The notes under the pieces are model-generated. The model did not search any database, was not told where the DNA came from, and worked only from the letters and a program-made list of their open reading frames with translations. Shown here piece by piece: positions 53,410 to 59,053 of a stretch of DNA of 64,000 nucleotides (its first letter is position 1; every line of letters starts with the position of its first letter). The position numbers were made by a program, and so were the translations under genes. The stretch lies in contig ADNK01001276.1 in assembly GCA_000320545.1 (NCBI GenBank), forward strand, positions 144,703-208,702, written 5' to 3'. This DNA is from Bigelowiella natans CCMP2755. Taxonomy: Eukaryota > Protista > Cercozoa.

Positions 53410-55215
53410 TCACTGTGTCACTTTCTCAACACAGACATACACTGTCCAAATGAGATCTCTTCCCTGATAGACTTCATTGATCGCTTCGTGTGCATAGCCA
53501 ACTGGGCAACTACACTTACCAGTCACCGGATTAGGAGGATTACACCCATCCCTTCCATAGGTATAACCACCAGCCACATACTCTCTAAAATCCAGTGTGG
53601 TACACGTGCGTCCGACTAATCCCTTCGGGCAATCGCAATACGAGTTAGGCTCCACACATTTTCCAGCTGCACAAACTGGACAGTTCTTCTGCTTGCTCCA
53701 TGAAGTCCAAGTATCTTCTAATCGCTGTTGAGAAAGAATTTCTATGTTACGTCTGACTGCTGTATCTTTTACAAACATGCTTATCGGCAAAGTTCGCATC
53801 TTTATCGGCGCAGGATTTTCGTAGGCAGTTTGTTTCCAAGCATCTTGACCACAATTATCCTGCTCAAGATTGCCATCCATGCACGTCTTAATCGAAGATT
53901 TTACATGTTTACTGAAAACATTCTGCGAGGCAGATCCAGTTCCTTGACCGAAAGATTTGCGGAAATATTCATTGGCCATATTCTCAATTACATCTAAGGA
54001 CTGCCCCTCAACTATGGGCATCGAACTGTCACCAAATAAAGTGTTTTCTACGTGCGTAATGACTTGCATCGATACGCCCTGAAACGCCTCCACTATAACT
54101 CTTTCCCCAAATTCGTCGAGGAGCTGATTGTAAAGATCTTTCACAACTGGATCGGAAAGATTCCTTGAATGACTTGACACATATTCAATTGCTGTCTCAA
54201 ATCTAGGATCCAGTGTGTAGGTCGTGGACATATTTTTTGTACCAGGAAACTTCACGTGATATGCAGGATATATTTGCTGAGTGGTAGTTAGGAAACCGTT
54301 ACCTCCACCAAAGAGGGTTGCCTCGAGTTCTGCGATGTTAGTTCCACGTAATGCTTTTGGCAGCCAGTTTGTCATTTCATTATCCCGTGGCCATGGTTTA
54401 ACGTTGTCTAGGTAAGTACTCCATGAAGGGTACAGGTTTGTAGATGTAGCTCCCCAGTGGAGCCCACCCATCATCGGAGTGAACTCAATTTCTGCAGGAA
54501 CAATCCAATCCTGCGACTTGCCATTTCCTGGAAGAAATTGAGTGTGCACGGTGGCCCCTTTGTCGACTTCGTACGTCAACTTTAAAACTTGTGTGTTTAG
54601 CAGCTCTCGAGTGATACCTACAACACTACGGCCAAGATGTAAATTCAAATTCTTTTGTGCTGAAGATGTGCCAACAGAAATTTTGCGAGAGTCATTGGCA
54701 AGCTTCCGAATGTAATTCCTTGCCTCTTCTGGGGATGCTGGAGTAATTTTACTGCAATCGGAACCTTCGAATCCAGGGCCGCATTCACACGAGCATGTTG
54801 TATCTGACAGTATACCCCCGTTCAAGCATGACAGTCCATCGCACACCTGCTGAGAGCAACTTGGCCCATAGAAGCCATCGTCACAACTGCACACATTGTT
54901 GAGACAGTCACCATGCATGTTGCATTCTCCACGATGCATGCAAACAGGGCTGTTTATGCGAGTGTAGGCGCTTAGGACTCCAACTGTATCCTTCAAATCG
55001 GAGACGTCATGTTGCAAGCTAGCAATTTCACCCTTTTGCTTGTGAAACTGTAATCCCAAGAACACCAGAGCAGCTGCCATAATGGCTATGATGAAGAAAA
55101 CAGATGTCAAAAAACACATTTTCTTTTTTGTAGATGAGACTTTTTCCCTCGCGTAGATAACACCACCATCTTCCGTTATCAAGGATTCAGAGTAAGCTCC
55201 CACGTGAGACGGCAT
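53410..55215 (-). CDS. Type II membrane-anchored EGF-MACPF protein with MPEG1/perforin-2-like Cys-rich tail (intronless, ~601 aa)
   Basis: First ATG at 55215 (MPSHVG). TM segment FLTSVFFIIAIMAAALVFLGL; short coiled coil; two EGF repeats. MACPF landmarks LGRSVVGITRE..LTY, LDPRFETAI, YNQLLDEFGERVIVEAFQG, W....ENPAPIKMRTLPISMFV. Then a further EGF-like unit and AGGYTY..CNPPNPVTGKCSCPVGY. Confidence 0.85.
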   Translation of the reverse strand: MPSHVGAYSESLITEDGGVIYAREKVSSTKKKMCFLTSVFFIIAIMAAALVFLGLQFHKQKGEIASLQHDVSDLKDTVGVLSAYTRINSPVCMHRGECNMHGDCLNNVCSCDDGFYGPSCSQQVCDGLSCLNGGILSDTTCSCECGPGFEGSDCSKITPASPEEARNYIRKLANDSRKISVGTSSAQKNLNLHLGRSVVGITRELLNTQVLKLTYEVDKGATVHTQFLPGNGKSQDWIVPAEIEFTPMMGGLHWGATSTNLYPSWSTYLDNVKPWPRDNEMTNWLPKALRGTNIAELEATLFGGGNGFLTTTQQIYPAYHVKFPGTKNMSTTYTLDPRFETAIEYVSSHSRNLSDPVVKDLYNQLLDEFGERVIVEAFQGVSMQVITHVENTLFGDSSMPIVEGQSLDVIENMANEYFRKSFGQGTGSASQNVFSKHVKSSIKTCMDGNLEQDNCGQDAWKQTAYENPAPIKMRTLPISMFVKDTAVRRNIEILSQQRLEDTWTSWSKQKNCPVCAAGKCVEPNSYCDCPKGLVGRTCTTLDFREYVAGGYTYGRDGCNPPNPVTGKCSCPVGYAHEAINEVYQGRDLIWTVYVCVEKVTQ

Positions 55216-55604
55216 CGCCGAGTGGTCCTCAAGAGCTACTATCAATCAGAACAGGCTGTAGCTGTTTCCTCATAGAGCGAATTTGCAGGGCATTTCACAT
55301 CTAAGACATCATCGAGATCCCAATAGAGAATCCAACCATGCCTTGTCGTATGGCTACTTTCCACGTGTAAGATACAGAATTGCGCTCTTAAAGTTGGTGC
55401 TGCCAACGTCGGAAGCTCATATTTTGGTACTATCAACAGATTCGCCTTGCCTTTCGTCTTCGCGACATCCAAAACCGCCGCTGATTTGTTTTCATTTGTG
55501 CTTCTTCATGAAAAGGGGAGCCGTTTTTTATGCTGCGACAGACCTTCCAAGGGGATCCTCGCGCCTATCAACAAGCCTCGTTTCGAGTGCAGCGAGTGGA
55601 ACTC
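55216..55604. promoter_or_regulatory. Probable bidirectional promoter shared by the two MACPF genes
   Basis: 389 bp between divergent ATGs; inferred from geometry only. Confidence 0.55.
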
Positions 55605-58600: not shown

Positions 58601-59053
58601 ACCAGCTATGTTGATAGCGGTTTGTTCGGAGGCATGGCGCATATCATGACATTTACAAATAACTCTTACATGAAAAAATTGGATGAGCACGATCAATCCA
58701 CTCAGATCTCATTTTATGCAATGTTTGAAAATCCGGATTTTGGAATTGATGGAGGCTTTAATACATCTGAGATTCTCAAGCATTTATCACAAGAAATGAG
58801 GAACAGTTCTACAGCCGAAAACTTTCTAATCGGAGGAATTGAGTCCAAAAATGGCACACAATGGGCTGCATCTCTCCCTTTCTATCCTGGGTTATATAAC
58901 GCTACTAGCACAACTTCACTTGCAAAGGCCTTCGAACCGGTTGACGCCAAAAAAGCAGCATACTTACAAAAGGTTTTGGAAGCTTATGCTTCACAACCAC
59001 TGGGTCAAAATCTTTATCCTGGTGATCCTGGTTTTCCCCCAGTTGAAATATAA
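55605..59053 (+). CDS. Secreted triple-MACPF-domain protein (~1046 aa; exons 55605-55665, 55713-57510, 57772-59053)
   Basis: Signal-peptide-like MQLLHLCFALASSTALRHFP. Two GT-AG introns join the 600-aa and 417-aa ORFs in frame (3141 nt total). Three GYD/GFD starts and three signatures: FGTDFIYLLKMGA, FGDVVATTASYGG, WGTSYVDSGLFGG. Confidence 0.9.
57725..57764. repeat. Exact 20-bp tandem duplication (tgattccaacgtttatcaaa x2) near the end of intron 2 of the triple-MACPF gene
   Basis: Directly visible. Confidence 0.9.

Follow-up and report, generated by a model that had tools for sequence, protein, structure and literature searches.

A head-to-head pair of MACPF genes in Bigelowiella natans: a putative two-part pore-forming system with conserved linkage

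A 64,000-nucleotide stretch of DNA from Bigelowiella natans CCMP2755 (contig ADNK01001276.1, positions 144,703 to 208,702 of the forward strand; the window in what follows) carries two MACPF genes, A and B, that are transcribed head to head and encode four MACPF domains between them: one in A, of degenerate signature, and three in B, designated D1 to D3. Because the linkage of the two genes is kept, apparently as one reading frame, in a marine relative that is only about 40% identical, A and B likely work together, and we consider them quite probably functionally coupled. That they are two parts of one pore-forming system is a putative reading that we hold tentatively, its chances being nearly balanced. 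A four-domain system encoded by two genes was what the original prediction, made on the letters of the window, had claimed; two expressed genes, four MACPF domains and a likely coupling (from the conserved linkage, the shared signature and a passed complex prediction of A with D1) stand, and the likeness of A to MPEG1 does not.

Results

The marine relative is represented by four ENA marine metagenome contigs (L005, L006, L007 and L014; L006 under PRJEB4352) of 58–61% GC that are mutually 98% identical. Its proteins A′ and B′ share 37–39% identity with A and, over D1, 43% identity with B. On all four contigs B′ follows A′ directly and in the same orientation, so that the two are at least adjacent and co-oriented there; of the pair that was to be sought in other genomes the linkage is thus kept, but the layout is same-strand and not divergent. 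On L006 the last A′ exon breaks off inside a thrombospondin type 1 repeat (TSR), in its first half, at a CAG|GTAAGC donor (2003/2004), and a predicted phase 0 intron (2004–2196, GT..AG) splits this repeat, its polypyrimidine-CAG acceptor (2196/2197) restoring the frame. From 2197 the frame is open, with no stop, to the contig end at 4947, and runs in order through the remaining Cys-rich repeat, a Hedgehog-type cleavage motif (G|CFEGGS), a Hint domain, a hydrophobic adduct-recognition-like region, a basic stretch, a signal-peptide-like segment ending in ..PTADG, and D1 and D2 of B′. The Hint domain matches PF01079 (E 7.5e-8, 32.7 bits; cut-off 29.7), starts with GCFEGGS directly after the TSR, and aligns with B. 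natans Hint open reading frames (ORFs) over TSTHLI, which contains the TxxH motif TSTH, and over GNIVVDGLHVSS. By its sequence it is a Hint domain with catalytic-Cys start and TxxH motif, placed after its cargo as in a Hog/Hint precursor, and cleavage is predicted. At this GC, a run of 330 codons without a stop, such as lies between Hint and B′, would arise by chance with a probability of about 3e-5, as estimated from base composition. Between strains there is a 1-nt indel inside the predicted intron, and coding positions 2197–2804 show one substitution and zero indels. Judged from these reading frames, the marine relative probably makes A′ and B′ as one precursor, which would be cut by Hint autoproteolysis and by signal peptidase. 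In the protein P0163, B′ runs through D2 without an intron at the position of B. natans intron 2, and a further 411-aa gene is next on the contig.

Homology of A to A′ ends in the first part of the A tail, beyond about aa 545, and the TSR-Hint-signal segment of the relative has no match in the B. natans window or genome. At least five Hint loci matching PF01079 are present in B. natans, all on other contigs (C2409, C979, C1633, C2337 and C550; L008–L012), and the Hint/Hog locus on C2337 has an in-frame TGA. JGI (Joint Genome Institute) metagenome contigs gave no match to the marine relative, neither by protein pattern nor by exact 24-mer. Two further features of the marine contigs are recorded here as separate observations. 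At the site corresponding to L006:2804, in the Hint-coding region, L005 and L007 carry a 195-nt intron with a GT start and an AG/GA-rich core that is absent from 98%-identical L006; this is a presence/absence polymorphism between close strains, and the intron could be introner-like. At L006:1790–2300, the A′ module order MACPF-EGF-TSP1 equals that of the C-terminal half of complement C6-C8, by convergence or by old inheritance.

The second line of evidence is the MACPF signature, which in canonical form reads Y/W-G-T/S-H-F/Y-x6-G-G. Domain D3 is near canonical (WGTSY..GG), D2 (FGDVV..GG) and D1 (FGTDF..GA, with GG in the relative) are partial, and A is degenerate (FGERV..GV): its signature at F369–V381 (FGERVIVEAFQGV; 54073–54111, minus strand) has the Thr and the second Gly of the motif replaced. 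An alignment of 27 family members confirmed the degeneracy that had been read from A at first sight. Here G-G is present in all of the 23 deeper members that cover the signature, and G-T in nearly all of them, the exceptions being one GD and one GS; GE or GD together with GV is seen only in A (FGERVIVEAFQGV) and in marine A′ (FGDSVVVESLEGV). The degraded signature is confined to A and A′ and kept in both, and is therefore old and conserved. As read from this alignment, it is a derived trait common to exactly the lineage in which A adjoins B; it is not decay, and it points to a changed role for A.

The third line of evidence is the predicted contact of A with D1. Residues 185–545 of A and residues 1–330 encoded by B exon 2 were subjected to complex prediction, with a pass mark that is reached by 51 of 78 solved complexes and by 2 of 108 mismatched pairs. 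Three runs gave ipSAE (interaction prediction score from aligned errors) values of 0.66, 0.64 and 0.65, and all three controls gave 0.00; the pair, two of the four domains for which complex prediction had been proposed at the outset, thus passed against controls at about 0.65 versus 0.00. At least 75% of the contacts recur between runs, and the partners have a pLDDT (predicted local distance difference test) of at least 63. In the predicted interface, the β4 strand of A (438–451) and a helix-turn-helix (338–368) face D1 at residues 49–61 (the strand before TMH1, the first transmembrane hairpin), 113–125 and 265–285. As modelled, this is the canonical lateral β4/β1 edge of MACPF rings, and it supports the likeness without being proof of it.

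The gene models rest on ORFs and transcripts. The ORFs span 53410–55245 on the minus strand and 55712–57514 plus 57800–59053 on the plus strand, and all score above the Pfam MACPF curated cut-off. Transcript evidence over 53250–59200 comes from one raw RNA sequencing run and three sets of transcript contigs, each from a different study, and both genes are expressed in four of four data sets. Gene A (53410–55215, minus strand; start codon 55215–55213, stop 53412–53410) is a single exon encoding 601 aa plus stop. Transcript contigs from the three studies are collinear with it from ~53206/53313 to 55217–55246, through the stop codon, and A therefore has no intron. Gene B (55605–59053, plus strand; start codon 55605, stop 59051–59053) has three exons with 3114 coding nt, for 1038 aa, and two introns, both GT..AG and both defined by transcript contigs. 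Exon 1 (55605–55665) holds the start codon, a signal-peptide-like N-terminus (MQLLHLCFALASSTALRHFP) and the first base of a Gly codon, and is followed by a 71-nt intron (55666–55736), the joint 55665/55737 being present in three transcript contigs. Exon 2 (55737–57510) encodes D1 (Pfam match 56030–56596), a Pro-rich linker and the N-terminal two thirds of D2 (Pfam match 57152–57442). Intron 2 (57511–57771; 261 nt, phase 2, joint 57510/57772 in three transcript contigs) divides D2, and exon 3 (57772–59053) encodes the C-terminal part of D2 (to ~57982), a short linker, D3 (~58025–59050, signature WGTSYVDSGLFGG) and the stop codon. The counts of zero introns in A and two in B put forward in the original prediction are thus borne out, as is the head-to-head layout with start codons 389 bp apart. 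The start of exon 2 at 55712, as in the ORF and in that first reading, is ruled out, RNA placing it at 55737.

Between the start codons lie 389 nt (55216–55604), presumed to be a shared promoter region. Contigs for A end at 55217–55246 and those for B begin at 55561–55582, so that the 5′ ends are some 315–365 nt apart, with a depth of about 0–2 in between; no significant repeats were found in 55216–55604. Raw, 3′-biased RNA reads have minus orientation over the 3′ end of A and plus orientation over the 3′ end of B. Both genes were called automatically by JGI, and the product of the minus-strand ORF equals Bigna1 model 88043 (Bigelowiella natans) at 100% identity over aa 1–601. The 912-aa length of the JGI model of A was rejected: the splice after ..VCVEK occurs in no transcript contig, and the contigs run through the stop. 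The 311 aa that model 88043 adds are drawn from frame-wandering ORFs at window positions 51500–53410 (minus strand), where contigs end about 100–200 nt past the stop, and the extension looks mis-predicted. Two minor observations concern noncoding parts of the genes. In the 3′ untranslated region of A, at window positions 53269 and 53275, G>T and G>A occur in 3 of 22–27 raw RNA reads, as strain or allele variants or as errors; and intron 2 of B contains a (TC)n run (57599–57617) and, directly before the acceptor, a perfect tandem 20-nt duplication (GATTCCAACGTTTATCAAAT twice, 57726–57765).

Protein A is a type II membrane protein with its MACPF domain facing the lumen or the outside. Its N-terminus comprises a 32-aa segment ending in KKK, the sole hydrophobic span of the protein, which is a signal-anchor at aa 33–55 (55051–55119, minus strand; top Kyte–Doolittle window 2.74 at aa 35), and a long helix reaching to about aa 87 (aa 28–87 in the AlphaFold2 model). 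EGF-like repeats follow at aa 92–155 (54751–54942, minus strand; Pfam EGF_2 31.2 bits with a cut-off of 22.1, EGF_TEN E 2.5e-10); the membrane anchor and EGF repeats with which A had been credited are thus both found. PF01823 matches aa 339–500 (E 3.4e-11, 44.1 bits; cut-off 21.5). By PF01823, AlphaFold2 and Foldseek, the MACPF fold extends over aa ~185–505 (53701–54663, minus strand), and the model contains the bent central sheet and two helical clusters, at the TMH1 (263–306) and TMH2 (391–437) positions, that make up this fold. The model, built from 27 family sequences, has a mean pLDDT of 76.7, with values of mostly 83–95 in the MACPF domain, ~63–75 in the helical clusters and below 50 in the tail. 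Foldseek aligned it to C6 (6.9e-14) and MPEG1 (1.7e-13), and also to GNIP1Aa, Plu-MACPF, C8 and perforin (E 1e-11 to 7e-14). Behind the MACPF domain come an EGF module (aa 512–540; weak in Pfam EGF_2, E 0.0038) and a Cys-containing tail (aa 541–601), which together occupy 53413–53682 on the minus strand.

This tail had been described as MPEG1-like, a claim that we could not uphold. A phmmer search with A of the PDB sequences gave EGF matches alone at E up to 1 and no MPEG1 match, the tail has the low pLDDT noted above, and as a fold match MPEG1 does not surpass C6, C8 or perforin, an Atlas fold search likewise showing no preference of A for MPEG1 over these three. No P2/MABP β-prism domain was found after the MACPF domain of A, where Pfam gives EGF alone and fold alignments to MPEG1 stop near aa 529, and a search of A for a C-terminal transmembrane anchor (type I) found none, its one hydrophobic span being N-terminal. 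With the anchor at the other end and no P2/MABP domain, A is therefore a MACPF protein but not one of the MPEG1 family; membership was rejected also for want of specific sequence or fold affinity.

Protein B is secreted and consists of three complete MACPF domains in succession, the second of which, D2, is interrupted by intron 2. It was searched and folded exon by exon, with D2 as two halves on either side of the intron and the same PF01823 cut-off of 21.5 bits. D1 is found at aa 98–286 of exon 2 (profile positions 15–209; E 3.8e-16, 60.3 bits), the N-terminal half of D2 at aa 472–566 of exon 2 (profile positions 15–107; E 1.2e-8, 35.8 bits) and D3 at aa 247–405 of exon 3 (profile positions 52–214; E 4.4e-9, 37.2 bits); the C-terminal part of D2, at aa 10–65 of exon 3 (profile positions 149–211), scores 21.2 bits alone, just below the cut-off. 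The profile search suggested for both products hence places A, D1, the N-terminal half of D2 and D3 above the cut-off. Pfam domains other than MACPF were not found in B, and with its signal-like start this agrees with the earlier description of a secreted protein with three MACPF domains and no obvious targeting domain. A search for homologous proteins with exon 3 gave no match, for which its length filter accounts. In the ESM Atlas model of the exon-3 ORF, residues ~85–426 align to perforin, C6 and C7 at template modelling (TM) scores of 0.58–0.65. The inserts at the TMH positions are of normal length in all MACPF domains, as judged from sequence, and B contains 19 N-glycosylation sequons. 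Beside these features, D1 has His motifs (HHGWFHS, FAHHA and GHHSD; 55970–56040 and 56360–56400, in the presumed TMH1/TMH2) that are identical in the marine relative, which is 43% identical overall. Such conserved His clusters in TMH regions might sense acid pH, a speculative idea that we think rather unlikely.

Searches of the 91.4-Mb B. natans assembly with PF01823, with D3 alone and with an A-family profile each find only these four domains as MACPF, match counts being lower bounds; the A-family profile also gave two EGF-only matches elsewhere in the genome. An exhaustive HMMER search recovered the EGF-MACPF-EGF layout of the A family in Pharyngomonas (Heterolobosea), Soliformovum (Amoebozoa), Pygsuia and Lenisia (breviates) and in metagenomes. 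By search and tree the closest relatives of A are these protist EGF-MACPF-EGF proteins and not MPEG1. In the tree, A and A′ are sisters (Shimodaira–Hasegawa-like approximate likelihood ratio test, SH-aLRT, 100) within a clade (95) that includes the Pharyngomonas and Soliformovum proteins, those of Pygsuia and Lenisia form part of a neighbouring group of the A family, and the B domains lie on separate long branches. Since A and A′ belong to an old protist clade and the B domains branch elsewhere, the adjacency of A and B does not stem from recent tandem duplication, an origin that was rejected also because BLAST among A, D1/D2 and D3 is weak (E 0.002 to 2e-5, short stretches only). The Pygsuia (P0019) and Lenisia (P0032) proteins have C-terminal DnaJ-type CXXCXGXG zinc-finger repeats (PF00684), an odd extracellular partner for a MACPF domain.

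Discussion

How A and B might act together can be outlined from the predicted contact. Possibly, B supplies a covalent arc of three protomers and A caps one end of it by its β4 edge, tethering or seeding assembly; we put this arrangement forward as a prediction of rather modest standing. Thus, the β4 edge and helix-turn-helix of A would dock onto D1 at its β1 edge, the resulting four-protomer nucleus would be tethered to the producer membrane, and further copies would extend it to a β-barrel. Since the Thr and second Gly of the signature are gone from A, the protein would more likely serve as a non-canonical subunit, at an end of the assembly or as its platform, than contribute to the bulk of the barrel. 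Action would probably take place in the phagosome or at the cell surface, on bacteria that have been ingested or contacted, because PMC5741210 lists B. natans as phago-phototrophic and A-family proteins are found in phagotrophic amoeboflagellates; bacterial prey as the target is nevertheless speculative, and we would not count it as likely. The two genes may also be co-regulated under feeding. As for the origin of the pair, the ancestor may have had the same-strand and probably single-ORF precursor of the marine relative, in the order A, TSR, Hint, signal segment and B, of which one inversion of the promoter-plus-A part would have made a head-to-head pair around a single promoter region. Such an inversion would account for three features together: a divergent gene layout, one short promoter region, and an A tail that has lost its homology after about aa 545.

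Several points weigh against one pore-forming system of this kind. The A-D1 pass may stem from solved MACPF rings that the predictor had learned (C8, MAC, MPEG1 and perforin; MAC, the complement membrane attack complex), and it is silent on which MACPF pairs with which. A comparison of B. natans with the relative shows interface residues conserved at background level (A 40% versus 40%, D1 46% versus 46%), which is uninformative. The AlphaFold2 model of B exon 2, made from a four-row alignment, has a pLDDT of 31.9, poor because homologues are too few, and the folds of D1 and D2 are thus taken from profile matches. The single-ORF reading in the relative comes from metagenomic DNA, in which translation of a separate B′ could begin at an in-frame Met immediately ahead of the signal-like segment. 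Compact genomes often contain divergent gene pairs, and anchorage in the membrane of the producer would serve protection no less than seeding.

The commonness of divergent pairs is one ground for regarding A and B as independent, their adjacency being the leftover of an ancient local duplication and their head-to-head layout that of an ordinary divergent pair. That all four domains are MACPF, and that the A-family profile finds D1–D3 (E 1e-11 to 3e-21), is consistent with local duplication. The linkage, however, has persisted although the proteins have diverged to about 40% identity and the orientation has changed, and in the relative it apparently takes the form of a one-ORF fusion; in the tree A falls among orthologues from other supergroups, apart from the B domains; and the complex prediction of A with D1 passed. 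On balance we find independence of the two genes unlikely.

A further explanation makes A an immunity or capping subunit, a tethered MACPF of disabled signature that would bind B oligomers at their growing edge and so block insertion of B on the producer membrane, with free B killing targets. The absence of the conserved Thr and of the second hinge Gly from A, and its anchorage in the producer membrane, would fit such a role, tight linkage or 1:1 co-production is typical of toxin/immunity pairs, and the predicted edge contact suits a cap as well as a seed. There is also a parallel in the two-component CDCL toxins, in which a surface lipoprotein of the producer blocks pore formation (PMC11169675). 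Yet the helical clusters that A retains at the TMH1 and TMH2 positions are normal in length, the known protectors CD59 and BcdI have neither MACPF nor CDC folds, and the deeper members of the A family, with their canonical signatures, look like stand-alone pore formers; an immunity function is accordingly a still more doubtful explanation. A non-lytic role in adhesion, signalling, cell fusion or life-stage transitions, like that of astrotactins, BRINPs and Torso-like, is improbable: the degenerate signature and EGF modules of A, the departure of D1 and D2 from the canonical motif and the expression of both genes in ordinary phototrophic cultures (several studies) speak for it, but D3 is near canonical (WGTSY..GG), the TMH-position inserts are of normal length in all domains, and B is purely MACPF, without an adhesion module.

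Returning to A and B as parts of one pore-forming system, the closest comparison is the complement MAC (C6, C7, C8α/β and C9). As proposed for A and B, it sets different MACPF subunits side by side via β4/β1 edges and has a non-canonical initiating end; it also has EGF after MACPF, and the MACPF-EGF-TSP1 order of marine A′ matches C6-C8. In contrast, A and B are without LDLa, Sushi and FIM modules and without a C5b-type trigger, three of their four MACPF domains are covalently linked, one subunit is integral in the producer membrane, and by the tree their origin is a protist family and not the animal one. With MPEG1/perforin-2, A shares a membrane-tethered, lumen-facing MACPF domain, and a phagosomal antibacterial role is plausible for both, but the A anchor is N-terminal (type II) and not C-terminal, A has no P2/MABP domain, and MPEG1 is a homo-oligomer. 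Unlike in pleurotolysin, the partner of A is itself a MACPF protein, and Pfam finds no aegerolysin match in A or B.

The two-component CDC-like toxins of Bacteroidota (CDCL-L and CDCL-S; PMC11169675, PMC11952106) are likewise encoded by two adjacent genes of the same superfamily, and such systems have a platform subunit and a producer-side blocker (PMC11169675); they differ from A and B in being bacterial, of the CDC-like family and protease-activated, with one domain per chain and no membrane-spanning anchor. More than one MACPF per polypeptide, as in B, is predicted for perforin-like proteins of some apicomplexans, which raise the same question of whether fewer chains make the pore, but these belong to unrelated lineages, are uncharacterised and have no linked anchored partner described (PMC7522308). 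The Hog/Hint proteins of protists resemble the marine relative only, in having a Hint domain with GCF Cys start, TxxH and a hydrophobic adduct-recognition-like region after a secreted domain. In the marine relative, by contrast, the cargo is a MACPF domain and the ORF continues into a second MACPF protein, and at the A/B locus of B. natans Hint was lost or never present. Hog/Hint proteins are known in protists including B. natans, MACPF or perforin not being mentioned there (PMC2362128). Literature on Bigelowiella with MACPF or perforin gave incidental matches only, in which genes A and B were not found described; of these, PMC4501334 does not describe them, and the others deal with unrelated topics.

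Conclusions

To our knowledge, the only hetero-oligomeric MACPF pores known in detail are those of animal complement, and it was only in 2024–25 that two-component CDC-like toxins were demonstrated in bacteria. In its fullest form, our proposal would be that rhizarians evolved a MAC-like hetero-oligomeric pore independently of animals, made of a tethered, signature-degraded MACPF and a covalent MACPF trimer; that these were ancestrally one self-cleaving polyprotein (A, TSR, Hint, signal segment and B) giving a 1:1 ratio, with A possibly lipid-adducted; and that this was split by one inversion in B. natans. Taken together, this chain of events is doubtful, and we offer it as a conjecture. If true, a tethered odd subunit with a three-domain chain would test the minimum number of chains for a giant β-barrel, a Hint-cleaved polyprotein would be a new way to fix subunit ratios, and the pair would give a handle on the killing of bacterial prey by mixotrophic algae. 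It would also be a clean example of gene fusion or fission tied to an inversion that creates a bidirectional pair.

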